Source: Auanema rhodensis (Eukaryota; Animalia; Nematoda). Taken from it: a DNA stretch of 64,000 bases. The position numbers and the translations under genes are program-made. The stretch lies in NCBI GenBank assembly GCA_964057225.1, contig OZ059900.1, positions 10,292,001 through 10,356,000 of the forward strand, given 5' to 3'. Below, one piece after another: positions 26,348-49,269 of the stretch (positions are counted from its first letter, which is position 1; each line of letters opens with the position of its first letter). Under the pieces are notes generated by a model, which worked only from the letters and a program-made list of their open reading frames with translations, did no database searches and was not told the DNA's origin.

Positions 26348-26373
26348 ATTATTATTATTATTATTATTATTAT
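26348..26373. repeat. (ATT)n microsatellite (mirror ~38719-38744)
   Basis: Direct reading. Confidence 0.85.
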
Positions 26374-26504
26374 TTATATATATTTAATAATTTAAAGAAA
26401 GAAAAAACAAGAAATAAACCAATTGACCAAATCTTACCCCTCACGTAAGTCATTAATGACCGGTACACCCAAAATAGTCAAATCTGACACTTGTGGTCAA
26501 AAGA

Positions 26505-26518
26505 ACGAGTGCACTCGT
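26505..26518 (+). promoter_or_regulatory. perfect 14-bp palindrome ACGAGTGCACTCGT at -65 to -52 of U2 (PSE position)
   Basis: Position matches snRNA proximal sequence elements; function inferred. Confidence 0.35.
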
Positions 26519-26569
26519 ATGAAGTACGATACATAATCTCTATGTTTATGTTTCTGACGACGTTGCAGT

Positions 26570-26758
26570 ATCGCTTCTCGGCCTTTTGGCTAAGATCAAA
26601 GTGTAGTAATCGTTCTTATCGAATTAACCTTCGATATGTGTTCCATTGGTTCACAATAAGGTTAACCGATTTTTGAGACCTGAGGTAGATGCTGGCTTGC
26701 TAGCTCCATCTCACGGGTCGACCCGCTCTTGCACTGCTGGCGGGAACGGCCCATCCCC
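26570..26758 (+). ncRNA. U2: U2 snRNA (variant)
   Basis: ATCGCTTCTCGGCCTTTTGGCTAAGATCAAAGTGTAGTA 5' end; stem IIa TATCGAA/TTCGATA; IIc pairing TTAACCT/AGGTTAA; Sm site ATTTTTG; stem III with CTTG loop; stem IV with TTGCAC loop. Confidence 0.97.
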
Positions 26759-26853
26759 TTTGGGGGAGAATAATCGTTCTTATCGAATTAACCTTCGATA
26801 TGTGTTCCATTGGTTCACAATAAGGTTAACGGATTATTTTTCCCCAAAGGGGA
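26754..26853 (+). repeat. 22-bp hairpin stem enclosing an exact 60-bp duplicate of U2 nt 38-97
   Basis: 26771-26830 = 26607-26666; 26754-26775 pairs with 26832-26853 (20 WC + 2 G.U). Confidence 0.92.
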
Positions 26854-27017
26854 GAGTTGTTACAGCGTCAGCATCTTATGCACTACTGATATCCCATTTT
26901 CGTATTGTAATCCAACCTCAACTGACTTGGAGACATAGGTAATAATGGGAAATTTATTTAATATATGGATTCATGTGATGATTTTCCATCATAATACGGT
27001 GAGTAATATTAAACTCC

Positions 27018-27124
27018 TGACAGAGTATTACCCAGATGTTCTATTTCTGCCAAAATTTGCTCACTTTCGGATGCCACGGTCAGCGAAGTTCACTATGATA
27101 ACCGCAAAACTAGCAATTTAATTC
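27018..27124 (-). ncRNA. spliced-leader (SL) RNA-like / Sm-site RNA candidate, possibly a relic
   Basis: 22-nt leader 13/22 identical to SL1 followed by GT; stem-loop; Sm site AAATTTTGG at nt 67-75; 3' stem GGCAGA/TCTGTC; adjacent to 5S. Confidence 0.35.
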
Positions 27125-27243
27125 GCTTACGACCATACCACGTTGAAAGTACGCCATCCCGTCCGATCTGGCAAGTCAAGCAACGTTGGGCCCGGTTAGT
27201 ACTTGGATCGGAGACGGCTTGGGAATCCAGGGTGCCGTAAGCT
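27125..27243 (+). rRNA. 5S: 5S rRNA
   Basis: GCTTACGACCATACCACGTTGAA..CATCCCGTCCGATCTGGCAAGTCAAGCAACG..TTAGTACTTGGATCGGAGACGG..GTAAGCT; 119 nt followed by a T-run terminator. Confidence 0.98.
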
Positions 27244-27296
27244 TTTTCTTTTTGTCAGAAAAAAAGTTTCTGAAATTAGTTTCATAATCAGATATG

Positions 27297-27904
27297 CACG
27301 AATTCGATTAGTGAGATATGATCGTTTTAATGAACTAGATACAATTTTGAAGACTGAACCTGACTGGGATAATGGAATGAAAAAGCTGAATTCTACAATT
27401 GCAATGTTAGAAGAGCAGGCTATCCAAACACCGTTTATTCGTTTTATAGTTTTGGTCTAACTATTCGAAAGAAGTTTGGTTTTTCAATTCTTTAACCCTA
27501 CACAACAATCTGCCAAGTCAGGGATATCTTCAAAATGAACAAGTAATCTGCCCCCCATGTGGCATACGGTGCACAACTATGTGAGGTCAACCTAATCGTT
27601 TAAGCAGAAAAATCAATTATAACGGGCCTCTCAAGACCCTATTATTCTAATTTTGAATCCTCACTATCTATTTAGTGAGGAAAATGAAAAGAATCTGATT
27701 CAGATAAGTGATTCATTCCAACATGAATCTCAATATAGAAACCGTATTCTCTTTAGTTCCTTATTGATTTTTGCTCTGTCATATATTGTATTTTAACATC
27801 AAATAGTATAACATCTTGGTGTAATGGTTGTATTCCAGGTTAGTTGATAAACTCTCCTTGGATCATATCCTCTCCAGGTAAGTTACAAAAATAAAAATAT
27901 TCAC

Positions 27905-27942
<38 letters not shown>

Positions 27943-28087
27943 ACCACACTCAATTGCAATATCTCCTTCCTACTTCATCATATATTCTCTCTATATATAC
28001 TGAATACCTTATATCAGCTTCACAATCCTTGATTCTGGTGTAAACAACGATTTCTTCCACTTTGCGGTTAATTATCATACTTATCAC
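27297..28087 (+). repeat. dispersed repeat module B; other copies ~31920-32722 (+), 32724-33155 (-, partial), ~37007-37795 (-)
   Basis: Copies aligned by eye, ~88-100% identical in patches; contains a (CT)n tract. Confidence 0.92.
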
Positions 28088-28119
28088 CTGATTGATGAGA
28101 ATTAAACAATATTAATATG

Positions 28120-28193
28120 AACATAGTAGTCTAGCGGTCTGAGCATTGGACTGCATTCTACACGGGCAAGTACAATCCCTTTCTGCGTTTTTT
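28120..28193 (+). pseudogene. degenerate tRNA-like sequence (anticodon position GCA) with T6 run
   Basis: A-box-like TAGTCTAGCGG, partial acceptor pairing AACATAG/CTGCGTT, B-box-like GTACAATCC; stems imperfect. Confidence 0.45.
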
Positions 28194-28355
28194 AAGAAAA
28201 TCGATAGCATGTCGAGAATCCAAAAAACGCTCGGATGGATTTTAAATAAGAAAAAGTGTTAATTTTGGTATTTGAAAGCTGATATCTCTGTTCAAAGTCA
28301 ATATTTTTGAATTTTAATTGAGTCTTTCTGTAGTTATGAATCACTGCTTCTCGCT

Positions 28356-28913
28356 CACAAAATTTTCAAATACTTTCTCTTTTGGTTTGAGAGTTATAGC
28401 TTCATGAATATGAGATATGAAGCCTAAAGTTAGACTTTGAACAGCTCTATCTCCTCAACCATTAAGATTTTCAACAATTTTCTTTCGGATTCAGAATCTA
28501 CGTTATGAGATCTATCGAATAAGTTGTCAATATCGAAGTTTGAAACACTTTGAAATTTTGAAAATTAAAGAAATCAGCTAGTTTCAGGTTTGAGAAATAA
28601 AAATATTGCGTTTTCTAACTTTTAACTAGCTCAGACGATAGAGTTGAACATGCTGATTTCAAATTTAAAAATCCCAATTTTTAATTTTCACTTTGAAAGG
28701 AGTTATGAGACTTTAAAGTTGTTGACGATGAGCATTCAGAAGGATATATCTCCGTTCAGACGAATTTTCAGATGCTCGCAAGTATCAGGATCGTTTTCGA
28801 CGAGTTTGATTCACCTATGTGATAAATTTCGAAAGTTTTGCTCGAAATTTTTAGTTTTTGATAGGATGATCCCATTCCATGTACTCCCCCCTTACCTACT
28901 TTTTGACTGAAAA
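28356..28913 (+). mobile_element. repeat module D, ~550-bp DNA-transposon/MITE-end-like sequence; other copies ~31333-31890 (-), ~33185-33742 (+), ~36162-36720 (-)
   Basis: Four near-identical copies; ends in GTACTCCCCCCTTA; recurring GAGATAT/GAGTTAT/TATCTC motifs as seen in subterminal repeats of non-autonomous DNA transposons. Family unassigned. Confidence 0.6.
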
Positions 28914-29864
28914 TCGATCGATATCGATGAGCAGTCACCTTCGAAATTTCAGTAAATTATTCTTTTTTTCTGACATCTTAAGATCTCCGTTATTATCTTC
29001 TAATGTGGCATGTTAGTGAGAGGAAAAAGAATATATTTCTGAGGTTATACTACACTTTATTTATATTAGTAGCATAAGTCGTGTTCTAGCTAGTAGAAAA
29101 CCAACATTTCATTAATCTTCTATAAGTTTTATTTTTTTGTGATTAGTTCATAGAGACATAAAAACAAAGATAGATAAGGTGAACTATAATGAATAAACCT
29201 TAGATGAGATTGGCAGTTCTCTCCCACGTGCGATACAGGCCCAAATACCTTACGTTTCAAAAATCACTTAATCATTGTGAACACGAATGTCTGTTTGCAT
29301 AGAGCAATTAAATTAAAATTTCAAAAGAATTAGCGAAGGTCTTAGATATATTCAACTTTTATTAGCTGTAGTTATCACTTATATACTCATTTGTTATTAG
29401 CTGCAGTTTTAAACTGAAAATAAACAAAAGTTTTTTGTTGTTCAAACCGCTATTAAAGCAGAAACTAACAGTAGAGGTTTTAAAATAATTTGTTATTTCC
29501 AACATAAAATAATCTGTAACATGAAAATATCTATGCTAAACATATGTTTTGTAAAAAGATCAAATGAATAACTTTCCAACTCTATTTTCATGATAGGCTG
29601 TTAGTTATAATTCTTGCAGTTCTGGTCTGCCAACCTTATGCTTAGCTAAAGACACTCACTTGTCCAATTGATTACTACTAACACGGATAGTTCAAAATCT
29701 CAATTTTTTCATTTTTAAAGTTCCTAAAAATTGTTAATGAACAGTGCAGTTTAATACACATGACAAACAATTATGATTTTAATTCATAATAATTGAAATT
29801 TATTTTTTAATTTATTTTGAACTTACTTTCAGATCAGTCTGTTGTTTTCATATAACTCTTCTAA

Positions 29865-29958
29865 TTTGTCCCGCATGGAAAAGCTTTGTCACCGTAATCA
29901 TGTTTGGCAATTCAAATTTTATCAGCCTAAATTATTTATGATAAGCAAACAAACTACG
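29865..29958 (+). promoter_or_regulatory. conserved upstream block shared by orphan genes E, E', F, G (TTTGTCCCGCATGGA..ACCGTAATCA..TTTTATCAGCCTAAATT..TGATAAGCAAACAAACTAC)
   Basis: Same ordered blocks on the - strand at ~35117-35210, ~42000-42098 and ~45760-45858; contain two GATA (TGATAA) sites and a forkhead-like TGTTTGC. Confidence 0.65.
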
Positions 29959-30083
29959 GTAAACACGATATAATATTGATTATTTTTATCTTTTTCTTTG
30001 TTTAATGGTTACTTACGACAACTGGCATACGGTATATACAGTATACAATCTCCCACTTCAGGTCATTGATTTGGTTTTCTAGA

Positions 30084-30988
30084 ATGCCTGGCACACGTAA
30101 GAAAAATAACATTGATCCAAACTGGAATTTTTCTGATTCTGAGGAGAGTTGTTTCATGCAGGAGGCTCCTGCATCCAAACTAAGAAAAGTGAATGTATCA
30201 CAAACGCATTATTGCACTCGCTCACGTTCGCGTTGTTCAAATATAAACCAATCAAAATCTTCAACACCCCATCATTCTTCACAAAACCGCACTGTAAAAT
30301 TTGATAAAGTTATCACAATAGTGAGTTTAATGAATAAAGTACTTCTTTCTATTATGACTGATTTTTAGATTGGAGAATCTAATATTATATTCAATTTTGA
30401 TAACCAAATTTCACATGTTGATAAAGACACAATTTTTCGGCACATTATCGTTCACAATCCTGAATTGGCTTCAAAACATCCTATTAGAGCACACATGGTT
30501 CCGAATTCAGTTTGTATGAATGTCGATAATAATGTATCTATGGATCAAGAGTTTTCCGAGCATAGACAAACGTCTTTGGAATGTCGGAAAATTAAACGTG
30601 CGCTGCGCGACATCTTGGAACAATGTTCTCAGTCTTCTTCTTGTTTCATCCAGTGTTTGGGCGAACGTTTAGCCAGAATTGATTATGAATTTTTACATCT
30701 AGTAAGTTGTTTAATGAATGATTCTCTATCTTAAGACATACTTATTTTCAGAACAGTGAGATAAGTAGTGATTCTGATGAAAATGATTTTGATATTGCTG
30801 AACATTTTCAAGTCGATGAAAAATCAAATGTTTTCAATGAGTACAAAGACATAGCAATGGAAAAGACAAAGGTCCCTGCATTCGGTATCTCCGAAAATGT
30901 TCGAGATTGTAATACGCTTGAGGGTGCTGTAGTTGTTGAAGAAGATGGAATCTTCGAAGTATATTGCGATTCCGTAGAGAAGTTATAA
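30084..30988 (+). CDS. orphan gene E, 268 aa, 3 exons (basic N-terminus, acidic C-terminus)
   Basis: Exons 30084-30320, 30369-30701, 30752-30988, all phase 0 with GT-AG introns; MPGTRKK..SDSEE start matches gene F MPRTRKR..SDSEE. Confidence 0.75.
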
Positions 30989-33900
30989 CTGTATTATTGA
31001 AGCTCTGTAAGATTTAGCAACATTGTGCCATATGTTTGTTGTTGTTGCTTTCTTTTTAAATAAATGTTATTAATATGCCATAGTTAGCTATGTGATATGA
31101 ACTCAGATATATATTCTAAGATTATCCTTGTTTCATCTTCCAATGTATTGTCAATCTCGTTTTGATGTCCAAAGGTATCACAAAGGAGAATATAATGAGA
31201 AACTAAGATTCCAAGTTTAAGAAGAGCAATCTTTACGTTGTTTCTTCTCTAAACCTTTAATTCGTTATAGTTGATATCATATAATTAACAAAAAAATTAG
31301 AAATTTTCAAAATATTTCTAGGATGATTGATGTTTTCAGTGAAAAAGTAGGTAAGGGGGGAGTACATGGAATGGGATCATCCTATCAAAAACTAAAAATT
31401 TCGAGCAAAACTTTCGAAATTTATCACATAGGTGAATCAAACTCGTCGAAAACGATCCTAATACTTGCGAGCATCTGAAAATTCGTCTGAACGGAGATAT
31501 ATCCTTCTGAATGCACATCGTCAACAACTTTAAAGTCTCATAACTCCTTTCAAAGTGAAAATTAAAAATCGGGATTTTTAAATTTGAAATCAGCATGTTC
31601 AACTCTATCGTATGAGCTAGTTAAAAGTTAGAAAGCGCAATATTTTTATTTTTCAAACCTGAAACTAGCTGATTTCTTTAATTTTCAAAATTTCAAAGTG
31701 TTTCAAACTTCGATATTGACAACTTATTCGATAGATCTCATAACGTAGATTCTGAATCCGAAAGAAAATTGTTGAAAATCTTAATGGTTGAGGAGATAGA
31801 GCTGTTCAAAGTCTAACTTTAGGCTTCATATCTCATATTCATGAAGCTATAACTCTCAAACCAAAAGAGAAAGTATTTGAAAATTCTGTGAAATAAATGC
31901 TGAATATGAAAGAGAGATCACGCGAATTCGATTAGTGAGATATGATCGCTTTAATGAACTAGATACAATTTTGAAGACTGAACCTGACTCGGCTAATGGA
32001 ATGAAAGAGCTGAATTCTAGAATTGCAATGTTAGAAGACCAGGCTATCCAAACACCGTTTATTCGTTTTATAGTTTTGGTCTAACTATTTGAAAAAAGTT
32101 TGGTTTTTCAATTCTTTAACCCTACACAACAATCTGCCAAGTCAGGGATATCTTCAAAATGAACAAGTAATCTGCCCCCCATGTGGCATACGGTGCACAA
32201 CTATGTGAGGTCAACCTAATCGTTTGAACAGAAAAATTAATTATAACGGGCCTCTCAAGACCCTTTTATTCTAATTTTGAATCCTCACTATCTATTTAGT
32301 GAGGAAAATAAGAAGAATCTGATTCAGATAAGTGATTCATTCCAACATGAATCTCAATATAGAAACCGTATTCTCTTTAGTTCCTTATTGATTTTTGCTC
32401 TGTCATATATTGTATTTTAACATCAAATAGTATAACATCTTGGTGTAATGGTTGTATTCCAGGTTAGTTGATAAACTCTCCTTGGATCATATCCTCTCCA
32501 GGTAAGTTACAAAAATAAAAATATTCACAACTCTCTCTCTCTCTCTCTCTCTCCATCTCTCTCTATCTATCTCTCCCTCAAAACCACACTCAATTGCAAT
32601 ATGTCCTTCCAACTTCAGCATGTATTTCCTCTATATATACTGAATATATCAGCTTCACAGTCCTTGATTCTGGTGTATACAACGATTTCCTCCATTTTGC
32701 GGTTAATTATCGTACTTATCACGTTCATGTTGGAATGAATCACTTATCTGAATCAGATTCTTTTCATTTTCCTCACTAAATAGATAGTGAGGATTCAAAA
32801 TTAGAATAATAGGGTCTTGAGAGGCCCGTTATAATTGATTTTTCTGCTTAAACGATTAGGTTGACCTCACATAGTTGTGCACCGTATGCCACATGGGGGG
32901 CAGATTACTTGTTCATTTTGAAGATATCCCTGACTTGGCAGATTGTTGTGTAGGGTTAAAGAATTGAAAAACCAAACTTTTTTCAAATAGTTAGACCAAA
33001 ACTATAAAACGAATAAACGGTGTTTGGATAGCCTGGTCTTCTAACATTGCAATTCTAGAATTCAGCTCTTTCATTCCATTAGCCGAGTCAGGTTCAGTCT
33101 TCAAAATTGTATCTAGTTCATTAAAGCGATCATATCTCACTAATCGAATTCGCGTGATCTCTCTTTCATATTCAGCATTTATTTCACAGAATTTTCAAAT
33201 ACTTTCTCTTTTGGTTTGAGAGTTATAGCTTCATGAATATGAGATATGAAGCCTAAAGTTAGACTTTGAACAGCTCTATCTCCTCAACCATTAAGATTTT
33301 CAACAATTTTCTTTCGGATTCAGAATCTACGTTATGAGATCTATCGAATAAGTTGTCAATATCGAAGTTTGAAACACTTTGAAATTTTGAAAATTAAAGA
33401 AATCAGCTAGTTTCAGGTTTGAAAAATAAAAATATTGCGCTTTCTAACTTTTAACTAGCTCATACGATAGAGTTGAACATGCTGATTTCAAATTTAAAAA
33501 TCCCGATTTTTAATTTTCACTTTGAAAGGAGTTATGAGACTTTAAAGTTGTTGACGATGTGCATTCAGAAGGATATATCTCCGTTCAGACGAATTTTCAG
33601 ATGCTCGCAAGTATTAGGATCGTTTTCGACGAGTTTGATTCACCTATGTGATAAATTTCGAAAGTTTTGCTCGAAATTTTTAGTTTTTGATAGGATGATC
33701 CCATTCCATGTACTCCCCCCTTACCTACTTTTTCACTGAAAACATCAATCATCCTAGAAATATTTTGAAAATTTCTAATTTTTTTGTTAATTATATGATA
33801 TCAACTATAACGAATTAAAGGTTTAGAGAAGAAACAACGTAAAGATTGCTCTTCTTAAACTTGGAATCTTAGTTTCTCATTATATTCTCCTTTGTGATAC

Positions 33901-34086
33901 CTTTGGACATCAAAACGAGATTGACAATACATTGGAAGATGAAACAAGGATAATCTTAGAATATATATCTGAGTTCATATCACATAGCTAACTATGGCAT
34001 ATTAATAACATTTATTTAAAAAGAAAGCAACAACAACAAACATATGGCACAATGTTGCTAAATCTTACAGAGCTTCAATAATACAG

Positions 34087-34991
34087 TTATAACTTCTCTA
34101 CGGAATCGCAATATACTTCGAAGATTCCATCTTCTTCAACAACTACAGCACCCTCAAGCGTATTACAATCTCGAACATTTTCGGAGATACCGAATGCAGG
34201 GACCTTTGTCTTTTCCATTGCTATGTCTTTGTACTCATTGAAAACATTTGATTTTTCATCGACTTGAAAATGTTCAGCAATATCAAAATCATTTTCATCA
34301 GAATCACTACTTATCTCACTGTTCTGAAAATAAGTATGTCTTAAGATAGAGAATCATTCATTAAACAACTTACTAGATGTAAAAATTCATAATCAATTCT
34401 GGCTAAACGTTCGCCCAAACACTGGATGAAACAAGAAGAAGACTGAGAACATTGTTCCAAGATGTCGCGCAGCGCACGTTTAATTTTCCGACATTCCAAA
34501 GACGTTTGTCTATGCTCGGAAAACTCTTGATCCATAGATACATTATTATCGACATTCATACAAACTGAATTCGGAACCATGTGTGCTCTAATAGGATGTT
34601 TTGAAGCCAATTCAGGATTGTGAACGATAATGTGCCGAAAAATTGTGTCTTTATCAACATGTGAAATTTGGTTATCAAAATTGAATATAATATTAGATTC
34701 TCCAATCTAAAAATCAGTCATAATAGAAAGAAGTACTTTATTCATTAAACTCACTATTGTGATAACTTTATCAAATTTTACAGTGCGGTTTTGTGAAGAA
34801 TGATGGGGTGTTGAAGATTTTGATTGGTTTATATTTGAACAACGCGAACGTGAGCGAGTGCAATAATGCGTTTGTGATACATTCACTTTTCTTAGTTTGG
34901 ATGCAGGAGCCTCCTGCATGAAACAACTCTCCTCAGAATCAGAAAAATTCCAGTTTGGATCAATGTTATTTTTCTTACGTGTGCCAGGCAT
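34087..34991 (-). CDS. orphan gene E', palindromic copy of E
   Basis: Mirror of 30084-30988; the ORF-track translations are identical. Confidence 0.75.
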
Positions 34992-36900
34992 TCTAGAAAA
35001 CCAAATCAATGACCTGAAGTGGGAGATTGTATACTGTATATACCGTATGCCAGTTGTCGTAAGTAACCATTAAACAAAGAAAAAGATAAAAATAATCAAT
35101 ATTATATCGTGTTTACCGTAGTTTGTTTGCTTATCATAAATAATTTAGGCTGATAAAATTTGAATTGCCAAACATGATTACGGTGACAAAGCTTTTCCAT
35201 GCGGGACAAATTAGAAGAGTTATATGAAAACAACAGACTGATCTGAAAGTAAGTTCAAAATAAATTAAAAAATAAATTTCAATTATTATGAATTAAAATC
35301 ATAATTGTTTGTCATGTGTATTAAACTGCACTGTTCATTAACAATTTTTAGGAACTTTAAAAATGAAAAAATTGAGATTTTGAACTATCCGTGTTAGTAG
35401 TAATCAATTGGACAAGTGAGTGTCTTTAGCTAAGCATAAGGTTGGCAGACCAGAACTGCAAGAATTATAACTAACAGCCTATCATGAAAATAGAGTTGGA
35501 AAGTTATTCATTTGATCTTTTTACAAAACATATGTTTAGCATAGATATTTTCATGTTACAGATTATTTTATGTTGGAAATAACAAATTATTTTAAAACCT
35601 CTACTGTTAGTTTCTGCTTTAATAGCGGTTTGAACAACAAAAAACTTTTGTTTATTTTCAGTTTAAAACTGCAGCTAATAACAAATGAGTATATAAGTGA
35701 TAACTACAGCTAATAAAAGTTGAATATATCTAAGACCTTCGCTAATTCTTTTGAAATTTTAATTTAATTGCTCTATGCAAACAGACATTCGTGTTCACAA
35801 TGATTAAGTGATTTTTGAAACGTAAGGTATTTGGGCCTGTATCGCACGTGGGAGAGAACTGCCAATCTCATCTAAGGTTTATTCATTATAGTTCACCTTA
35901 TCTATCTTTGTTTTTATGTCTCTATGAACTAATCACAAAAAAATAAAACTTATAGAAGATTAATGAAATGTTGGTTTTCTACTAGCTAGAACACGACTTA
36001 TGCTACTAATATAAATAAAGTGTAGTATAACCTCAGAAATATATTCTTTTTCCTCTCACTAACATGCCACATTAGAAGATAATAACGGAGATCTTAAGAT
36101 GTCAGAAAAAAAGAATAATTTACTGAAATTTCGAAGGTGACTGCTCATCGATATCGATCGATTTTCAGTCAAAAAGTAGGTAAGGGGGGAGTACATGGAA
36201 TGGGATCATCCTATCAAAAACTAAAAATTTCGAGCAAAACTTTCGAAATTTATCACATAGGTGAATCAAACTCGTCGAAAACGATCCTGATACTTGCGAG
36301 CATCTGAAAATTCGTCTGAACGGAGATATATCCTTCTGAATGCTCATCGTCAACAACTTTAAAGTCTCATAACTCCTTTCAAAGTGAAAATTAAAAATTG
36401 GGATTTTTAAATTTGAAATCAGCATGTTCAACTCTATCGTCTGAGCTAGTTAAAAGTTAGAAAACGCAATATTTTTATTTTTCAAACCTGAAACTAGCTG
36501 ATTTCTTTAATTTTCAAAATTTCAAAGTGTTTCAAACTTCGATATTGACAACTTATTCGATAGATCTCATAACGTAGATTCTGAATCCGAAAGAAAATTG
36601 TTGAAAATCTTAATGGTTGAGGAGATAGAGCTGTTCAAAGTCTAACTTTAGGCTTCATATCTCATATTCATGAAGCTATAACTCTCAAACCAAAAGAGAA
36701 AGTATTTGAAAATTCTGTGAGCGAGAAGCAGTGATTCATAACTACAGAAAGACTCAATTAAAATTCAAAAATATTGACTTTGAACAGAGATATCAGCTTT
36801 CAAATACCAAAATTAACACTTTTTCTTATTTAAGAATTTTTTTCTTATTTAAAATCCATCCGAGCGTTTTTTGGATTCTCGACATGCTATCGATTTTCTT

Positions 36901-36974
36901 AAAAAACGCAGAAAGGGATTGTACTTGCCCGTGTAGAATGTAGTCCAATTCTCAGACCACTAGACTACTATGTT
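36901..36974 (-). pseudogene. mirror copy of the tRNA-like relic (3 substitutions)
   Basis: Reverse complement of 28120-28193. Confidence 0.4.
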
Positions 36975-37151
36975 CATATTAATATTGTTTAATTCTCATC
37001 AATCAGGTGATAAGTATGATAATTAACCGCAAAGTGGAAGAAATCGTTGTTTACACCAGAATCAAGGATTGTGAAGCTGATATAAGGTATTCAGTATATA
37101 TAGAGAGAATATATGATGAAGTAGGAAGGAGATATTGCAATTGAGTGTGGT

Positions 37152-37187
<36 letters not shown>

Positions 37188-37848
37188 GTGAATATTTTTA
37201 TTTTTGTAACTTACCTGGAGAGGATATGATCCAAGGAGAGTTTATCAACTAACCTGGAATACAACCATTACACCAAGATGTTATACTATTTGATGTTAAA
37301 ATACAATATATGACAGAGCAAAAATCAATAAGGAACTAAAGAGAATACGGTTTCTATATTGAGATTCATGTTGGAATGAATCACTTATCTGAATCAGATT
37401 CTTTTCATTTTCCTCACTAAATAGATAGTGAGGATTCAAAATTAGAATAATAGGGTCTTGAGAGGCCCGTTATAATTGATTTTTCTGCTTAAACGATTAG
37501 GTTGACCTCACATAGTTGTGCACCGTATGCCACATGGGGGGCAGATTACTTGTTCATTTTGAAGATATCCCTGACTTGGCAGATTGTTGTGTAGGGTTAA
37601 AGAATTGAAAAACCAAACTTCTTTCGAATAGTTAGACCAAAACTATAAAACGAATAAACGGTGTTTGGATAGCCTGCTCTTCTAACATTGCAATTCTAGA
37701 ATTCAGCTTTTTCATTCCATTATCCCAGTCAGGTTCAGTCTTCAAAATTGTATCTAGTTCATTAAAACGATCATATCTCACTAATCGAATTCGTGCATAT
37801 CTGATTATGAAACTAATTTCAGAAACTTTTTTTCTGACAAAAAGAAAA

Positions 37849-37967
37849 AGCTTACGGCACCCGGGATTCCCAAGCCGTCTCCGATCCAAGTACTAACCGG
37901 GCCCAACGTTGCTTGACTTGCCAGATCGGACGGGATGGCGTACTTTCAACGTAGTATGGTCGTAAGC
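37849..37967 (-). rRNA. 5S: 5S rRNA, second copy (2 substitutions)
   Basis: Reverse complement of 27125-27243. Confidence 0.97.
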
Positions 37968-38074
37968 GAATTAAATTGTTAGTTTTGCGGTTATCATAGT
38001 GAACTTCGCTGACCGTGGCATCCGAAAGTGAGCAAATTTTGGCAGAAATAGAACATCTGGGTAATACTCTGTCA
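37968..38074 (+). ncRNA. mirror copy of the SL-RNA-like candidate
   Basis: Mirror of 27018-27124 with 1 substitution. Confidence 0.33.
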
Positions 38075-38238
38075 GGAGTTTAATATTACTCACCGTATTA
38101 TGATGGAAAATCATCACATGAATCCATATATTAAATAAATTTCCCATTATTACCTATGTCTCCAAGTCAGTTGAGGTTGGATTACAATACGAAAATGGGA
38201 TATCAGTAGTGCATAAGATGCTGACGCTGTAACAACTC

Positions 38239-38338
38239 TCCCCTTTGGGGAAAAATAATCCGTTAACCTTATTGTGAACCAATGGAACACATATCGAAGG
38301 TTAATTCGATAAGAACGATTATTCTCCCCCAAAGGGGA
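38239..38338 (-). repeat. mirror copy of the hairpin enclosing the U2 fragment
   Basis: Reverse complement of 26754-26853. Confidence 0.9.
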
Positions 38339-38522
38339 TGGGCCGTTCCCGCCAGCAGTGCAAGAGCGGGTCGACCCGTGAGATGGAGCTAGCAAGCCAG
38401 CATCTACCTCAGGTCTCAAAAATCGGTTAACCTTATTGTGAACCAATGGAACACATATCGAAGGTTAATTCGATAAGAACGATTACTACACTTTGATCTT
38501 AGCCAAAAGGCCGAGAAGCGAT
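38334..38522 (-). ncRNA. U2: U2 snRNA (variant), second copy
   Basis: Reverse complement of 26570-26758. Confidence 0.97.
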
Positions 38523-39293
38523 ACTGCAACGTCGTCAGAAACATAAACATAGAGATTATGTATCGTACTTCATACGAGTGCACTCGTTCTTTTGACCACA
38601 AGTGTCAGATTTGACTATTTTGGGTGTACCGGTCATTAATGACTTACGTGAGGGGTAAGATTTGGTCAATTGGTTTATTTCTTGTTTTTTCTTTCTTTAA
38701 ATTATTAAATATATATAAATAATAATAATAATAATAATAATAATGAGAATTATAAAGTTTTTATATAAAATCACAAAAAAAAAATTTTTTTCAGATATTT
38801 TTTTCGAGTACCTGTGATCTTCATGAACTCATGTTAGTAGTGGTGCTCTTCCCCTCCTATTCATCAACTTATATACAAATATATTTTTAATATATAGTTC
38901 CATATGAATATATAGATAAAGAGAAACATTTGAAGGGAAATATTTAAAAAAAAGTATAATATACCGTACACCACAACTCTCTAAAATACATTTTCAGGAA
39001 AACGCCCAAATTTCTCATTTCAAATGAAATATAATGGTATGTGAAACATATAGAAGCTTTAACCATTTATAAAATTTTTATTTTCTTTATAACATCACAA
39101 ATTGGAAAAATTGTGAAAAGTCTTGCAGTCATCATAACCTTAAACAAGTTCTAATTTAAAAATAAAACAACAAATCACAGCATATTCACAGAATACAATC
39201 AAGTTATTTGAATACAAATAACATAATTTACAAGACAAAGGGAAAAAATCATAATTTAATAGAATATAGCATACAGTTTACAACTCACTATGT

Positions 39294-39647
39294 TTAATCC
39301 TTGTTATCTATAATTTCTTTGAAATACCTTCTAGTCTCCTCATATTCCGTCATCAATGGCTTTGGAACTGTCATGTTGTTATCGAAATAAACTTCGATTT
39401 CACTGGCAAGAAATCGAAGATGTTGAGTCATAAGGGAATGAAGCTTCTGATATTCTTTGAACATGTTACTCTTATGCTCTTGTTCTCTTCTATAGTTTTC
39501 CTCTTCAGCTAATTCAATTTTCATTAAAACTTGTTCAATTTTCCGATGCATCTTTGCTTCATCTGTCATTAGACCAAAATCAAAGAGCATACGATTATTC
39601 ATTTCTTCGTCGTCGGAAACTGTTCCGTTGTTGTGTTGTAGTGCTTT
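39294..39647 (-). pseudogene. 5'-truncated copy of orphan gene A (last exon only)
   Basis: The palindrome ends inside the preceding intron, so exons 1-2 and the donor are missing. Confidence 0.7.
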
Positions 39648-39742
39648 CTATTATAAACGATCAAGAGATTCATAAAGGAGATATTATCTTATGTTTATTA
39701 TGTTTATGTTTATTATTATTTTCTCTTTAATTTTTATTTCAG

Positions 39743-40174: not shown

Positions 40175-40586
40175 GGAGTGATGCTTGTTATATTAAAGTA
40201 TTTCTCATTTGAACATTTTTTTCTAATTTCTTTAATTTATTTCGCTCTGTTCTCTATAGCTTAACAAACACCGTTGATTCACATAGCATTTCTTGATGAC
40301 CAATAAAAAAAAAACATTATTGAAAAAGTGAAGCAAAAGAAAACAAACAGATTTGCCTAAAACAAGAGATCAAATTCAATTATCTTCTATCGAATAGGAG
40401 ATCAAAAAGTACGTTTCAGACAAAGGTAACATTCATAGGGTTTTTCAATCAAACCAGCAGTAGCACACATATATTCTTGCAACATTTCTGAATATAATTT
40501 TCATTAAATTGAATAATTGCCATTAAAATACCTTCTCATCATTGCAAAAACAAAGAAACCACAGGTCCATAGTTTGAGAAATCTGA

Positions 40587-41692
40587 TTACTGATTTTCCA
40601 TATTGAAAGTATCTAATTGATCGATAAAATTATCATCAACCACTACTTTTTCAGAATCCTGATGATCAAAATCGCCAGCATTCGAAGAGTTATCGGATTC
40701 ATCACCTCCGAGATAAAAAGGCTCTTCATGATAAACGTGACCCAAATCTGCATCTTGCAAATGTAATCCACAAATATCAAGCTAAAAAGATAGAATTTCA
40801 TTAAATTTACAACTTAGTAGTAGTTCGAGGATGCTAATTTACAACTTACTGGTTGTTTGAGTACGTTTTCAATCTTGCCCATATGCTTATAGATGAGCTG
40901 AATATTCTCTTCAAGCTTCATACTAATTTTTCGCCAGAAACTAATAACACGAGAAGACCCAAGCTTTGCAGAGCGTGCAACGTTTTGATGAGCCACGTTT
41001 TCTATAATAATACAGAACAATCACACACAAATTAAATAATACTAAATACCTAACAGTTCTTTATAACTGGGAGTAACGTAATGTTCCGGGATCAACGGAA
41101 GACCTTCCAATCTTAACAAATTATTGTCCCGCACGCTGTCAGAACCTTCGCAAAACGTGTAACGAACCAAAACAAGTGATTCACCACTTCGAATCCTGGC
41201 CACTTTATCTTCTAAATCAAAATCCGGCTTATTCTTAAAAAAAATCTTCAGCGCATATTTGACAGTTCTACTTACTTCCCCACCGATATCCAGTTCTAAT
41301 TGTTCTATGATTTTCCGGACATCATTCTTGGATTCCCTAAGTAACTCGCACAGACGGATCCAATATGAATTGTTAAAGGCCGAGAACGATGAAGGATCCT
41401 CGTCCAAAAAAATGTCCGGAAATTCGAAATTGCCTTCAATAGGTTTTGTTACATCCTGAAAACCATATTAAACCAATAAAATTCTACTAATTATACTCAC
41501 CTGGGTTCGTGCGTACTTTACAAAAGATAGGTGATCATCGAAAGCATTTCGAAGGAAAGGAATAAACTCGTTACAATACTTCTTCCATTTTTTCATTTCG
41601 TCAAAGCGTATGTTTCTTTGCAGAAACTGACCAGGTTCTTCAGAATCACTCCGATTTGCTCGAACTGCATTTCTTTTACGAGTGCGAGGCAT
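40587..41692 (-). CDS. orphan gene F (E-family)
   Basis: Exons 41692-41501, 41455-41050 (with a probable 42-nt internal intron), 41001-40850, 40781-40587; ends LDTFNMENQ*. Confidence 0.75.
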
Positions 41693-42676
41693 TCTATGAA
41701 ACAAAAGTTGAATCTTGAATAAAAATATAAAGTTCACGATATTTACCTGGATGATTATTACTAGAAAGTTGCAGAATAAATGCAAACTGAAAACAATAGC
41801 TTGAAGAGATTTATGATATAATATAGATCAAAAAAATTAACAATGAACATATATCTATAACATCTGTTTACCAATGACCTGAAGTAAGAGAAGGAACACT
41901 GTAGATACTGTATGTTAATTGTTTTTTAGTTGTTTGTTAGTTGTTTGTACCATAAATAGAAAAAATGATGAAAATAATCAATAACATACTTTGTTTATTG
42001 TAGTTTGTTTGCTTATCAAAAACAATTTAGGCTGATAAAAGTTAAATTATTAAGCTAAATCTGATTACGGTAATAAGGTTTATCCATGCGGGACAAATTC
42101 AAAAACAAAAACAAAAATGAAATTACGATTAGAGCATAAGTGCAACGTGAGTTCAACTAAAGTGCAATTTTTTATAATAAATATTAAAAAACATTATACA
42201 CTTCTCACTTTTGAAATTCGAGTGTATTTTCATAATTAATTTATAAAATGCTCATTGCAACAAGCTGAGGTCTCATTCTTCTTCCTGAATAGTTACTAAG
42301 CTATTACAAACCATGTGTCAATAAGAATTAATTCTTCTTTTTTCTTGTTAGCTATTCACATACTGATTCTGATTTAACTATCAATAGTGCTATGTTGTGA
42401 ACGTTTGATAACTTAAACAAGATTAAGTAAAAGAAGATGAAAGCTTTCATTTCAGAAATATGGCTTGCTGGTCAATACTCTGGCAAAAATTAAATTATTA
42501 AAATGAAATAGAATAATAACAAATTAAATATTTTAAATTATTATATACATGTCTCATCCAAATAAAACAAAATATATAAATAAATAAAGATATTTGAATG
42601 ATTAAATGATTGAATGATTATATCATTAGTGTCATAAATCAATATTTTTGTATAAACGCTTAACTACACAAAAAAA
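41690..42676. repeat. ~987-bp direct repeat, copy 1 (upstream/5' UTR of gene F)
   Basis: Matches 45450-46436; only 2 mismatches found by eye. Confidence 0.95.
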
Positions 42677-43885
42677 AAGAAATTAGGCCAAGTATTAACT
42701 ATGTTCCCATACCGTAGTATATAATAGTTGAAAAATATATAAATCATGCACATATCTAAAGCAATACACCCTAATGATGAATGACTCCACCGTTCAAGTG
42801 CAGTTATGTTAATTTCTCATATATGATGAAAACATGTATGCTGCTTCTCATACTAGGGGTGTCAATAAATAAATCTCCGCACGTTAGAATTGGAAAAAAT
42901 ATACTAGTTTTACAAAGTTAAAAATGTTTTTTATTGAATTACAAAATTAGAATATATTCAAATATAATAAACAAAAAAAAAGTTTCAAAATTTAATTTTT
43001 TTCTGAAAAAACTTTTTGATTTTAGCTCTTTTTTTCATTGTTTGTTATGGATGTAGCACATACCTCACATTCTTCTTTCTCATTTTGAAAGGGGCGTTCT
43101 TAGAAACTTTTTTGTTATTTCAATTGCTAACACATTAAAATTATTTGTCTATACTCTATATAATTAACATTTGCAATAAACGTTTAGCAAAATAACATTT
43201 GTATGCTTCATAACTTGAAAAAAATACTTTCAAAATTTAAAAGCACAAAAACCTCAGCAAGTAGTTAGACAACAAAGCTTCCGAGAATTATCAGATTTAT
43301 TAGGTCATATTTTCGTTTTTATTTCTTTTTTTCCTTCTCTTTCTCATGATTATCATAAAAGTAATTAACTCAATTGTTTATTATCATTCTATAAATGATC
43401 TGCTTTAAAAGTTGTAGACAATTGTCTTTATCTTAGAAAAGGATATAAGAGAGCATACCTGTTAAAAATAAAAAATAAATAGTTGTCAAGGAAATGGATA
43501 TTTTCTTAGTTTTACCTCAATATTTCCTGCTCAATTTGATGCGTTTTGTTTTTAATTTTACTTTAAAACCTGTTCTCACACGAATATTGTTGGATCATTA
43601 AAATAAATTAGTGACTTCTATAAGTATATTCTGGATGAGTAATTTCAAATAAATCTTATGCCAATTTTTAGAACTTTCATATTGAATACAATTATAAGTT
43701 AAATTATTACAATCGCTTTATGATTATTGCATCCGAATAATCGATTTTTTCGTATCTCATATAAGTCACTCTTTCCTTTGTGATTGCAGAGAAGTAGTTG
43801 ATACGCAAAACATTTATTGAAGAAAAACAAAACAAACAGCAACGAAACAGCGAAAAATCAAGCACAGCATTAATCAAAATGAAAA

Positions 43886-44271
43886 GTCAAAACACAAGCA
43901 GAAATAACAGATTTGCCTAAAACAAGAGATCAAATTCAATTATCTTCTATCGAATTGGAGATCAAAAAGTACGTTCCATACAGAGGTAACATTTATAGAC
44001 AAAGTTAACAGTCAAGCATAGTAATAATCAAAATGATATGTCAAAACATAAGCAGAAATAACAGATTTGCCTAAAACAAGAGATCAAATTTAATTATCTT
44101 CTATCGAATAGGAGATCAAAAGTACGTTTCAGACAAAGGTAACATTTATAGGGCTTTTCAATCAAGCCAGACTATAATACAGCAGTAGCACACATATATT
44201 CTTGCAACATTTCTGAATATAATTTTCATTAAATTGAATAATTGCCATTAAAATACCTTCTCATCATTGCA
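43886..44271. repeat. 3' flank of gene G, homologous to gene F 3' flank (40346-40546), with an internal 154-bp-period duplication
   Basis: AACAGATTTGCCTAAAACAAGAGATC.. present at 40346, 43906 and 44060. Confidence 0.9.
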
Positions 44272-44312
44272 TTAACATAACAACTTCAACGTCAACAATT
44301 TGAAGGTTTTGA

Positions 44313-45452
44313 TTATTTTTTTTCAATATTGAACGTATCTAATTTAGCAATAATATCGTCCCATGCAAGCATAATCTCAGCATCTTGGTCATCAAATTCA
44401 TCTGCATTTTGAACATTAACAATACCTTCAGCACTACGTTCCTCATAATTGTTAGTGGATACACTTTCCACATTCTCAACGGTTTGCCCGTAGTTGTTAA
44501 TAGAGCGCTAAAAACAAAAAGTTAAATTTCATCAACTCATCTTACCGCCTGCATAAACATATTTTCAATTCTAGCTATATGTCGACAAATGAGCTGAATA
44601 GTGCAATCAAGTTTCCAACAAATATCACGCCAAGAAGAAACCACGCGAGAAGATCTGAGCTTTCCACAGCGTACAGCTCTTAGACGGGACAGATCTTTGT
44701 AACCTATAACTAATGAGATAAACACTTCAACGCATTTCGAATAACAGTACCGGAACCTCTAATTCGTTTGTAACTGGAAGAATCAACACTGATAGGCTTT
44801 CCACTATCCTGAAATTTCGCAGGAACCGCAGGGAAAACAGGACGTTTTTGTAAGGATGCTCTTCTATTTTCCGGAGTTTTAAAGCTTGAAGGGGAGTACA
44901 AAAAAGTAGACTTATATCTTCCCTTCATGGAATAAGAGAAACCTGGGTTTTTAGTTACAGCTGATCTGTCAATCTAAAAACAGAAGTTATCGAATGTCCT
45001 GTAAATATACTAACAGGCCCACAAATCTTTTCTTCAAATAATCTCAAATGATGCTGGATATGTCTTATATGTTGTTCCAATAATGAAACAAATTGCATCC
45101 AATACAAGTTATTTGAAGCCGAATGTTCCCTGTTCAAATATTCGTCGACGCCGCGATAATCAAAGGATTTCTAGAAAACCAACATAATCAAACAAAAACC
45201 TCAGCTCATCCTACTCACCATCAGAGAAAGCTCGCGTTCAGCAAGGAAAAGGTGATTGTAAAAAGCCTGATAAAGATACGGTCTGAGGTGTTTACAGTAG
45301 TTCCTCCAGTAATGTAAAAATCGTGCACATGTTATTGCTGGTTGGAAGATAAGAGGTGCCACAGGTACTATAATATTTGACGAACGCACACGTCGACCCC
45401 AGTTATCGAACGCAGCTTTTTTATTTGGATTGAAATTAAAACCGTGAGACAT
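44313..45452 (-). CDS. orphan gene G (E-family), 5 exons
   Basis: GT-AG splicing gives a continuous frame MSHGFNF..YWMQFVSLLEQHIR..KLRSSRVVSSWRDIC..LDTFNIEKK*; intron positions match gene F. Confidence 0.72.
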
Positions 45453-46436
45453 TCTATAAAACAAAAGGTGAATCTTGAATAAAAATATAAAGTTCACGAT
45501 ATTTACCTGGATGATTATTACTAGAAAGTTGCAGAATAAATGCAAACTGAAAACAATAGCTTGAAGAGATTTATGATATAATATAGATCAAAAAAATTAA
45601 CAATGAACATATATCTATAACATCTGTTTACCAATGACCTGAAGTAAGAGAAGGAACACTGTAGATACTGTATGTTAATTGTTTTTTAGTTGTTTGTTAG
45701 TTGTTTGTACCATAAATAGAAAAAATGATGAAAATAATCAATAACATACTTTGTTTATTGTAGTTTGTTTGCTTATCAAAAACAATTTAGGCTGATAAAA
45801 GTTAAATTATTAAGCTAAATCTGATTACGGTAATAAGGTTTATCCATGCGGGACAAATTCAAAAACAAAAACAAAAATGAAATTACGATTAGAGCATAAG
45901 TGCAACGTGAGTTCAACTAAAGTGCAATTTTTTATAATAAATATTAAAAAACATTATACACTTCTCACTTTTGAAATTCGAGTGTATTTTCATAATTAAT
46001 TTATAAAATGCTCATTGCAACAAGCTGAGGTCTCATTCTTCTTCCTGAATAGTTACTAAGCTATTACAAACCATGTGTCAATAAGAATTAATTCTTCTTT
46101 TTTCTTGTTAGCTATTCACATACTGATTCTGATTTAACTATCAATAGTGCTATGTTGTGAACGTTTGATAACTTAAACAAGATTAAGTAAAAGAAGATGA
46201 AAGCTTTCATTTCAGAAATATGGCTTGCTGGTCAATACTCTGGCAAAAATTAAATTATTAAAATGAAATAGAATAATAACAAATTAAATATTTTAAATTA
46301 TTATATACATGTCTCATCCAAATAAAACAAAATATATAAATAAATAAAGATATTTGAATGATTAAATGATTGAATGATTATATCATTAGTGTCATAAATC
46401 AATATTTTTGTATAAACGCTTAACTACACAAAAAAA
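45450..46436. repeat. ~987-bp direct repeat, copy 2 (upstream/5' UTR of gene G)
   Basis: Offset of 3760 bp from copy 1. Confidence 0.95.
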
Positions 46437-46723
46437 GATGATCTGTGTACTAGTTACTAGTTTTACAGTCTTATTTTCCAAGATATTCTTGTTATACGTT
46501 ATACCTAAACCCTACCTCAACGAAGAATAGACGATCTATTTTTTCGTTGAAATTGTTATTATTCGTTCATACAACCATTCTACCACTGTTGCCTGTAGTA
46601 ATGAACCTGAACGGAATATTATCAACTTGATACACAACTAAATACTCGTGACAAACCCTGTAGATACGGTTTTTTTCTTGATCTACAATTTATGATATAA
46701 CTACAAAAAATTACTATGACTTC

Positions 46724-46836
46724 GCTTACGACCCTACCAAGTTGAAAATACCATCCCGTCCGATATGACAAGTTAAGCAACGTTGGACTCTATTAGTTCT
46801 CGGATCAAAGCCGGCTTGGTAATCCCGGGTGCCTTT
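46724..46836 (+). pseudogene. 5S rRNA pseudogene
   Basis: GCTTACGACC..GTTGAAA..CCATCCCGTCCGAT..AAGTTAAGCAACGTTGG..CCCGGGTGCC with substitutions, small deletions and a lost 3' end. Confidence 0.9.
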
Positions 46837-47245
46837 TCATTTTTATTAAAAGTATTTGAATAAATAAAGATGTTGTGGTAGTTGAAAACAGCTTTTGTTA
46901 AGTATGTACACATGTTCTCTATTTATATATTAGCCTAACACATTTTTTGATTATATCATTCTAATTAGCATGTAGCATTCTACAACAGAATTTTACACTT
47001 GTTTGATTAATTTCGTTTTTTTTTCCAAAAGTTATTAACTCATACACTAATAATGAAATAAATTAAACTTTAAAAAGTTATAATAAAAGTTTATGAAAAC
47101 AAAATACATTACAATTTCCTGTTATAAAAAACACAGCTAAAACAAACAATTATTAATAATTCAAATTTTCTTCCACTATATTTCAGGTATGCTGACAGCC
47201 AAGTGTACTGAAACTAGTAGTTAATATCAATTAGATTCATTAAAC

Positions 47246-49269
47246 TTACAATTTTAACTTCAAACTGTCATTTAAATCAACGTATTGTTTCTTATTAGCT
47301 TCAAATTCTTCCAGCATACCATCAGGAATAGGAGTACCACTTTCCAGACATTCTTGTGTTTGTTCACGAATGAATTTCAAATAATCCAACATTAAGGAAA
47401 AAAGTTGGCGATATTTCATATGTATCACACAACTGAAGCTTTCTTCTGAACGAATGCTCTCAGCCATATCATTTAGTGTTTGTGAATAATATGCTCTGAG
47501 TTCTGCATTCTTTTGTAGCTTATTATGATTATTTAAGTCAATATCCTGAAAAAAAAAACATTTAACGCATCATTTGCAAAGTTTCAGATCCTATTATCCA
47601 TTAAAATGTGAATTTACTTTGGAAATAAAAACTCATAAATTAAAAAAGAGGATGTAACACTAACCAATTTGCTTTCTTCATATTTGTCTTCATTATGAAA
47701 ATCATTCGTTTCCTTAACCAATTGAGGAAGATCAACCAGTTCACCGTCTTCAATTTCATCATCTAAGTCTGATCCCACCACGAAGTTTTCAATTATTTCA
47801 CGAACTAATTTCGGAGGTTTATCTTCTATGCTTTCTTCCAGTTCATTCATTGGATCCAGATGTGTGTTATCTGTATCAGTTTCAATATCCATATCTGAAC
47901 AAGAGTATCTATCCAGGTTACCACCCTGCAGATTATAAGCTGAGTTTGGGATTGTGTCCTTGTTGAAGCAGCCAAATTGATAATTTGAGTCAGGTACTAT
48001 GTTAGCAATACTCCTATCCATTTCGTTAACTAAGTCTCCAATAATGTCAACGGTTGTTTCTTCCATTTTCTCGACTGTGTTCGGAACATTGTCAGCAATA
48101 CCGTTTTCCATGGCATCAACTAAGTCTCTGATTGTGTTATTGTCCTCAGCTTCCATGACTGTGTCTGGTATTCTGTCAACAATACTTTCTTCCATTTCTT
48201 CTATTAAACTTTGAATTGCATCCACGATAATATTTTCGATCTCCTCAACAGAGTGGGGACTTCTGCTCTTGTTGAAACCTCCTATTACGTTAGCAACGCC
48301 TGAGCTTCTGTCATCGATACTCTTCTGCATTTCTTCTATTAAGTCTTCGATTATGTTTTCGGTATTATCTCCAATTGCTGTAACCGTGTCTGGGATTCTT
48401 CTGACAATGGTATTCTCCATTTCCTCAAGAGAGTGGGGACTTTTGCTCTTGTTGAAACTTCCTATAGCGTTAGCAAATCCTGAGTTTCTGTCATCGATAC
48501 TCTTCTGCATTTCTTCTATCAAGTCTTCGATTATGTTTTCGGTATTATCTTCAATTGCTGTAACCGAGTCTGGGATTCCTCTGACAATGATATTCTCAAT
48601 TTCCTCAAGAGAGTGGGGACTTCTGCTCTTGTTGAAACTTTCTATAGCGTTAGCAAAGCCTGAGTTTCTGTCATCGATACTCTTCTGCATTTCTTCTATC
48701 AAGTCTTCGATTATGTTCTCCTCATTATCTTCAATTGCTTTAACCGAGTCCGGGATTCTTCTTACTATGGTAATTTCCATTTCCTCAATTAAGTTTTGTA
48801 TTGTACTCACAATCAGTTCATCAGTATCGTCTGGATAACGACTAAAATCATTCAATCTATTAGTTGAGGTAGAAGTTTCGTTGACAGCACTATTATCCAT
48901 TCCCGCAACTAAGGTTGCAGTCGAGTTCTCGGCGTTATATTCCATTTGAACAACAGAGTTGGAGATTTCATTCTCTATGTTGTCTTCAATTTGATTAATT
49001 ACGTCTCTGATTGTAGTGACAACAGAATCTTCTAATTCTTGACTGCTTTTGTCTATTTCATTTACGATCCTCTTTAATACGTCAGCAATACAGCTTTTTT
49101 CTGAAGCTGTTCTCTCCAGTTCCCTCTCTTCGAGAGCTATTTGATTCATCAGCTCAGTATAAAGAAAATTTTCATCGCCCTCGAATGTAACAAAATCGTT
49201 GTAGAGAGCAATTTCATGTTCCTATAATGATGTTAAATCTAGAAAAATAGGCGACAATTAACTAACCAT
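47246..49269 (-). CDS. orphan gene H, ~619-aa acidic repeat protein with an A-family C-terminal domain
   Basis: ATG-only exon (49269-49267), exon 49221-47665, exon 47545-47246, all phase 0; long stop-free frame. Confidence 0.82.
48230..48790. repeat. three in-frame 180-bp (60-aa) tandem repeats in gene H
   Basis: Unit approximately ENTIVRRIPDSVTAIEDNTENIIEDLIEEMQKSIDDRNSGFANAIGSFNKSRSPHSLEEI. Confidence 0.93.

Follow-up and report, generated by a model that had tools for sequence, protein, structure and literature searches.

How can two neighbouring genes possess almost identical DNA on both sides of coding sequences that have very little left in common? This question is raised by genes F and G, two same-orientation neighbours on the minus strand of a 64,000-nucleotide stretch of the Auanema rhodensis genome (hereafter the window; contig 8, positions 10,292,001–10,356,000, G+C ~31%), taken from a nematode assembly of 181 Mb in 112 contigs. 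We propose that the regulatory flanks of these old paralogues were copied non-reciprocally from one gene to the other, by ectopic gene conversion in the broad sense, and that this happened at two different times; we put the probability of this reading at roughly 0.7. The features on which it first depends are the following.

40587–41692, minus strand: gene F, 314 codons, exons 41692–41501, 41455–41050, 41001–40850 and 40781–40587
44313–45452, minus strand: gene G, 319 codons, exons 45452–45219, 45170–45015, 44973–44757, 44703–44546 and 44507–44313
41709–42676, minus strand: 5' block at F, 968 bp that match the G copy at every position; promoter and probable outron
45469–46436, minus strand: 5' block at G; the 181-Mb genome has no third full copy
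41686–41708, minus strand: acceptor/start patch of F, with the acceptor-like TTTCATAG, one A and the ATG; 20 of 23 positions match the G counterpart, 45446–45468

When the window was compared with itself by BLAST, an ungapped match of 41686–42676 to 45446–46436 emerged, 991 bp long and 99.70% identical, with 3 mismatches. The first-pass annotation had described ~987 bp with 2 mismatches, ending exactly at the ATG; the block is real, and its dimensions and its end are corrected here. All three mismatches (41708, 41698 and 41689) fall within the last 23 bp, which hold the acceptor-like site and the ATG, and an in-register comparison at an offset of 3760 gave no mismatch in the 968 bp from 42676 down to 41709. 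With the start codons at 41692–41690 in F and 45452–45450 in G, perfect identity ends 17 nt before the ATG and recognisable identity 6 nt past its first base; from 41685 onward, F and G match at the random level. A sliding 60-bp profile of both 3.76-kb units gave a constant 60/60 across the block, with a vertical drop at either end. The distal edge (42676 in F, 46436 in G) is as sharp as the proximal one and lies at a T-run, nine long in F and seven in G, and no homology was found beyond it between 42677–43843 and 46437–47613 (local score z 0.9 relative to shuffles). Nine hundred and sixty-eight consecutive matches beside DNA that matches at the random level cannot be of chance origin. In the whole genome, the 991-bp block occurs at F and G only, plus a partial match of 68–73% in each arm of a palindrome that is described below, so that the further copies for which the first-pass annotation had allowed do not exist in full.

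The 5' block contains no open reading frame (ORF) of at least 50 aa, and no Rfam match was obtained within it, even at E values up to 1. An upstream coding exon spliced onto the ATG was considered and rejected, since the sole plausible mini-exon, as judged by eye, leads to a stop four codons before the ATG; the block therefore contributes no common protein sequence to F and G. It had been labelled a 5' untranslated region (UTR), but is more likely to consist of promoter and outron, with a YAG acceptor placed 1 nt before each ATG. Canonical SL1 spliced-leader genes number in the thousands in this genome, so that trans-splicing can be assumed and a spliced-leader acceptor would be the simplest role for this YAG. 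The SL1 leader with its donor has more than 3,600 matches (allowing up to 2 mismatches) on contig 3, in three loci at ~6.74–6.77 Mb and 14.13–14.14 Mb, where they form tandem arrays with periods of ~252 and 341 bp; C. elegans has ~110 copies, far fewer than are matched here.

The gene bodies between these flanks are very different from each other. The introns of F (45, 48 and 68 nt) are all GT-AG, and its model translates without a stop. The G model does so given a 41-nt intron at 45014–44974 (GTTAGT...TTTTTAG), in the absence of which an in-frame TAA would truncate the protein; we argue that this intron is real, because ~190 codons downstream of it remain open in AT-rich DNA, in exactly the frame that splicing predicts, and because G has a further intron of 38 nt. 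The donor that follows the 41-nt intron, GTTCCG at 44756, is a weak one. G may be decaying, or its introns may simply be very short (38 and 41 nt). Three introns are common to F and G and lie in the same phases. Spliced models of F, G and the third gene, H, were joined only for pairwise comparison, and database searches were carried out exon by exon. The F and G proteins are identical at 84 of 287 aligned residues (29%), with a global score 15 and a local score 38 standard deviations above shuffles; they do align only in patches, as had been noted, and scores so far above shuffles indicate that F and G are homologous but very distant. Over the aligned codons, nucleotides are 49% and third positions 39% identical, the proportion of synonymous differences (pS) is 0.71 (synonymous divergence, dS, ~2.3, saturated) and nonsynonymous divergence (dN) is 0.71, while the introns are 49–71% identical after optimal alignment, which is near the baseline for short AT-rich sequence. 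Saturated synonymous sites, poorly matching third positions and diverged introns together show that the bodies are old at neutral sites, and not merely fast at the protein level, and that F and G are ancient tandem paralogues. The dN/dS ratio can be computed (0.31), but it is meaningless at a pS of 0.71. Of the earlier proposal that gene conversion homogenises the flanks while the coding regions diversify, the first half is supported, whereas active coding diversification is not readable from a saturated ratio.

Searches beyond the locus returned little. No Pfam family was found for any of the nine exon translations, and an exhaustive HMMER search of F exon 2 against 1.84 billion representative proteins yielded no true relative, with one spurious match to a repeat protein. 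The ESM Atlas was uninformative, with low recognition, and the AlphaFold model of F exon 2, a low-confidence single-sequence model with a predicted local distance difference test (pLDDT) score of 43, contains some helices. In the translations, F and H start basic, all three proteins have acidic C-terminal tails, and a hydrophobic segment is absent from each N-terminus. Exons 2, 3 and 4 of F, exon 1 of G and exon 2 of H had no match in the 181-Mb genome beyond this locus, and as far as these searches indicate, F/G is an orphan, locus-restricted nematode gene.

Downstream of the coding sequences, F and G again converge, in a second and shorter block.

40346–40545, minus strand: 3' block, F copy, inside the probable 3'UTR; 88 bp identical to G, followed by 4 substitutions in 111 bp
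44060–44270, minus strand: 3' block, G proximal copy, carrying a 12-bp insertion
43858–43998, minus strand: tandem twin of the distal 3' block in G, 91% identical to 44012–44151, which serves as an internal outgroup

The first-pass annotation placed a common 3' flank of ~200 bp from ~40 bp past the stop, and this was borne out: the block begins 41 nt past the stop codon in F and 42 nt past it in G. In each gene it starts after the stop and precedes the first AATAAA, a position that probably puts it within the 3'UTR. F 40545–40458 and G 44270–44183 are the same over 88 bp with no mismatches, after which come the 12-bp insertion in G and then 111 aligned bp, in which 4 substitutions and a single 1-bp gap occur, up to the end of the block at F 40346 and G 44060. 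The last coding exon and the first ~40 nt of the 3'UTR are only ~65% alike between F and G. Like its upstream counterpart, the 3' block is found in the whole genome at F and G only. Its distal 140 bp are tandemly duplicated in G, and the twin makes it possible to ask which copies group together. Inside the block, F and the proximal copy of G are grouped by 4 informative sites, versus 1 and 1 for the other groupings, while in the 18 bp just past its end the proximal copy of G groups with its own twin by 6 sites versus 0. Small as these numbers are, a switch of relationship at the end of the block is the classical signature of a conversion boundary, and it shows that the F–G exchange of the 3' block is younger than the duplication inside G.

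Gene H supplies an outgroup for the 5' block.

29771–30988, plus strand: gene H and its promoter, in palindrome arm 1; promoter 29771–30068, exons 30084–30320, 30369–30701 and 30752–30988; 268 codons
34087–35304, minus strand: H' and its promoter, in palindrome arm 2; the mirror of H, oriented as F and G are, and 100% identical to H over the parts compared (gene body 34087–34991, minus strand)
41707–41871, minus strand: 165 bp of the F and G blocks with no equivalent in H, between the promoter islands and the acceptor/ATG patch

The upstream region of H (29771–30068) matches block positions 42189–41872 at 68% over 321 bp (E 1e-39), and its acceptor, ATG and first ~50 coding bases match F 41706–41640 at 70% over 67 bp (E 1e-5), with no such match to G. 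The layout before the start codon, TTTTCTAG in H followed by one A and the ATG, is that of F and G, and because YAG-A-ATG is common to all three genes, the 23-bp acceptor/start patch is best read as old homology that forms the proximal junction of a younger tract. The kinship of H and F is limited to the promoter islands and the ~20 first codons. H was rejected as an F/G paralogue in its body, since a profile of F and G scored -1.2 bits on it, below shuffles; the spacing 'IQ...ARI(E/D)' before a phase-0 exon end, common to H and F/G, is anecdotal. Within the matching upstream DNA, six perfect islands of 10–19 bp are present in both the F/G block (41872–42099 and 45632–45859) and the H promoter (29863–30068 and 35007–35212), separated by diverged spacers. 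Two of the islands carry GATA-type cores, one of which abuts a forkhead-like core, and the longest, a 19-mer, occurs exactly at four places only in the genome, namely F, G, H and H'. These islands look like the phylogenetic footprint of a constrained cis-regulatory module, which we consider a candidate, and the GATA-like and forkhead-like cores suggest, as a guess, expression in the digestive tract. Where the outgroup H retains islands only, F and G are 100% identical; since constraint keeps only the islands, identity of F and G over the spacers, and over 490 bp beyond the last island, points to recent copying and not to selection.

The 14.3-kb palindrome that contains H and H' occupies 25403–32351 and 32724–39689 of the window, with a spacer of 372 bp between arms that match at 99.47% over 6,968 bp, with 16 mismatches and 2 gaps. 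Each arm carries a U2 small nuclear RNA gene, a 5S ribosomal RNA (rRNA) gene and a copy of gene H, and the outer edge of the palindrome lies ~650 bp from the 3' block of F. The divergence of its arms provides a local yardstick for the two blocks. No difference in 968 bp gives a 95% upper bound on divergence of ~0.31%, and the arms differ at 16 of 6,968 sites (0.23%), a rate that predicts 2.2 differences in the 5' block, with a probability of 0.11 of finding none. The 5' event could thus be as young as the palindrome, and because the two divergences are compatible, it is conceivable that both may have come from one burst of rearrangement. In the 3' block, 4 of 199 bp are substituted (2.0%), and at 0.23% the probability of at least 4 is ~0.0015. 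By these counts the 3' block is significantly older, and 0/968 versus 4/199 substitutions indicate two separate events, of which the 3' copying was the earlier.

These observations can be accommodated by a simple sequence of steps. A piece of ~970 bp, from the promoter up to the splice acceptor before the ATG, would have been copied recently between F and G, while the 200-bp block of the 3'UTR would have been copied separately and earlier. In each case, repair synthesis would have been templated by the same-orientation paralogue 3.76 kb away. At the gene side of the 5' tract, the anchor may have been the 23-bp acceptor/start patch, the only short stretch that F and G still had in common there, and the conserved promoter islands of the H type perhaps aided anchoring. 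The far end was apparently sealed at the T-run, where nothing alignable lies beyond, so that microhomology or a template switch is a better fit than double-ended recombination of the classical kind. An event guided by homology at one end and by microhomology at the other is what would be expected of synthesis-dependent repair that overran its homology, or of a template switch. The tracts would stop at the coding bodies because these, at 49% nucleotide identity, are no longer similar enough to pair; chimeric proteins may in addition have been selected against, but the pattern does not require it. F is weakly hinted to be the donor, since its promoter is contiguous with an H-like coding start, as in H itself, although, had the ancestral promoters of all three genes been alike, the block could equally well be native to G.

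Three features of the locus agree with what is expected of conversion. The paralogues are older than the tracts (pS 0.71 and 29% protein identity, against 0/968 and 4/199 differences), the identity is longer than the flanking divergence allows (968 matches beside random-level DNA), and the grouping of sequences changes at the boundary of the 3' block (4:1:1 inside, 6:0:0 outside, both small numbers). In C. elegans, conversion is favoured between same-orientation paralogues 1–8 kb apart, with tracts of 12–2958 bp and a mean of 117 (PMC3966223), and F and G, with the same orientation and a distance in the kb range, present the conditions under which it is most frequent there. Four points weigh on the other side. 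Older homology flanks the 5' tract only as the 20/23 patch on the proximal side, the distal side having the T-run alone, and with none detectable past that edge the tract does not look like the product of a textbook two-ended conversion. The tract, at 968 bp, seems long beside the C. elegans mean of ~117 bp; the role of the YAG as a spliced-leader acceptor is predicted from sequence; and the whole F–G structure is read from the letters of one assembly of one strain.

The alternative that survives best, although we consider it unlikely, is a promoter-only segmental duplication without homology, in which a 968-bp piece was inserted by luck before the start codon of the paralogue. The distal junction, at a T-run with no older homology beyond it, is what such an insertion would leave, and Katju and Bergthorsson have warned that partial duplications can mimic conversion (PMC3966223). 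However, the piece would have had to land 17 nt from an ATG, in the right orientation and register, at a paralogue 3.76 kb away, which is very unlikely by chance, and the proximal junction lies in the conserved 20/23 patch. No remnant of a displaced promoter was found upstream of either copy of the 5' block, suggesting that the event replaced the old promoter and did not add to it. The 3' block, moreover, records an independent exchange of the same kind.

It is more doubtful still that errors of assembly or polishing created the second copy or its perfect identity. Over-polishing of near-identical repeats can produce 0 differences in 968 bp, but polishing cannot make unrelated sequences identical, and the copies here stand in unique, mutually unalignable flanks, 3.76 kb apart and within the span of a single long read. 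The edges of the 5' block make biological sense, lying 17 nt upstream of each ATG, and in the 3' block there are genuine differences as well as an indel. Mis-joining of two haplotypes in tandem was excluded separately, as the flanks beyond the blocks are not homologous.

The first-pass annotation had also offered a cassette system, in which coding bodies are exchanged or selected between fixed handles, as in antigenic variation or immune families. Near-identical 5' and 3' flanks around very different bodies are the hallmark that invites this view, H has the 5' module in common, and the locus is structurally restless, with the 14-kb palindrome adjoining it. Nevertheless, we regard it as very improbable, because the 181-Mb genome contains no donor library and no other copy of either flank or of the F, G and H exons searched, the two flanks differ in age, the N-termini are charged and lack a hydrophobic signal segment, and there are only two bodies. 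With the blocks and the family members found at this locus only, neither a cassette library nor a transposon family exists. A related view, to which we give similarly small weight, is that the flanks have been kept by selection as regulatory and recombination handles of a fast-changing, locus-bound family made up of F, G, H and H'. If it were true, a body could be joined to other flanks, or whole 3.76-kb units could come and go, and the expressed body could vary heritably, even within a lineage.

A mobile or retroposed element inserted beside both genes merits even less credence. On the plus strand the block ends in an A-run of 7–9, like a retroposed tail, but the run is encoded at both copies, and two insertions at equal distance from an ATG are implausible. 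Genome-wide there are only the two copies and two old H promoters, and the block has no ORF, no terminal inverted repeats that reach its ends (only a weak, non-terminal 33-nt pair at 73% was detected) and no target-site duplication that could be seen at its ends. Least credible of all is a recent duplication of the whole gene after which selection drove extremely rapid change in the coding parts alone. The reversed conservation recalls the 'accelerated evolution' of venom genes, but such a history is excluded by bodies that are old at neutral sites (synonymous sites saturated at a pS of 0.71, third positions 39% identical), by diverged introns and by unalignable intergenic DNA outside the blocks.

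Several neighbouring structures deserve mention in their own right. The palindrome arms contain nested repeats (27299–28087, 31923–32722, 28355–28913 and 31333–31891, with their mirror copies), one of 805 bp at 94%, directly oriented, and an inverted one of 559 bp at 98.6%, and the sequence adjoining the centre of the palindrome repeats a segment located farther from it in the arm. A degenerate 5S rRNA sequence at 46724–46825 on the plus strand (31.7 bits, against an Rfam threshold of 38, and 83% identical to the 5S genes of the arms) sits 288 bp upstream of the distal edge of the G block, with nothing comparable upstream of the F block. The next gene upstream of G is an uninterrupted ORF of 511 codons (47614–49149, minus strand) that encodes a very acidic protein and includes three tandem repeats of 180 bp (48224–48788, 88–91%). 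Homologues of its 511-aa product were sought as a route to synteny, and none was present among the scored candidates.

If flank-only conversion is the correct reading, the consequence is that F and G should now have the same cis-regulatory input. The locus would represent a natural promoter swap, in which the input of an old pair was reset to identity in one step while the proteins differ at 71% of positions, and F/G would be a convenient test of how far the expression of duplicates follows the promoter alone. Conversion can in this way erase regulatory divergence, a possibility usually ignored in models of duplicate-gene retention, and annotators should be warned that upstream identity of two genes need not imply that they are young duplicates. 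Because the two 968-bp blocks are direct repeats, the 3.76-kb unit that contains G should also be prone to deletion or duplication.

Several known systems can be set beside F/G. Trypanosome VSG and Plasmodium var genes have constant flanks or conserved upstream classes around variable bodies, and F/G resembles them in this respect; those systems depend on numerous silent donors, on an expression site and on products that are secreted or borne on the surface, whereas at F/G these are neither present nor indicated. In human HBG1/HBG2, likewise tandem duplicates, the conversion tract spans the 5' flank and breaks off sharply at a simple (TG)n repeat, much as the F/G tract ends at its T-run, but there coding exons lie within the tract and the two genes hardly differ overall. 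Venom PLA2 and conotoxin genes have UTRs and introns that are more conserved than their exons, so that non-coding flanks are more alike than coding sequence, as in F/G. Those genes, however, keep similar introns and synonymous sites, while the introns and synonymous sites of F/G are as diverged as its replacement sites, indicating that the flanks are young rather than that the exons are fast.

In the purple sea urchin, the flanks of the clustered Sp185/333 (SpTransformer) genes are conserved on the 5' and 3' sides up to simple-sequence DNA, and the coding parts vary more than would be expected of close neighbours, for which duplication and/or conversion via simple repeats has been proposed (PMC3091723). 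That family comprises more than 40 immune genes with mosaic elements and true microsatellite bounds, in contrast to the two genes (plus H) considered here, with their saturated divergence and a T-run at one of four edges. The closest parallels are the tandem paralogues of Caenorhabditis for which conversion has been described, including hsp-16, col-12/col-13 and fog-2/ftr-1, together with the genome survey of Semple and Wolfe (reviewed in PMC3966223). Like these, F and G are same-orientation neighbours a few kb apart, with a sharp tract of identity in anciently diverged DNA, and the length of the tract is inside the reported range of 12–2958 bp, although ~8x the reported mean (PMC3966223). F/G differs in having one junction without detectable older homology. 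The classic Caenorhabditis cases homogenise ORFs, sometimes with their introns, and leave the flanks diverged; F/G is the reverse, with homogenised flanks and untouched ORFs. The process is an ordinary one and not a new mechanism, and it is the homogenisation of flanks alone that is uncommon.

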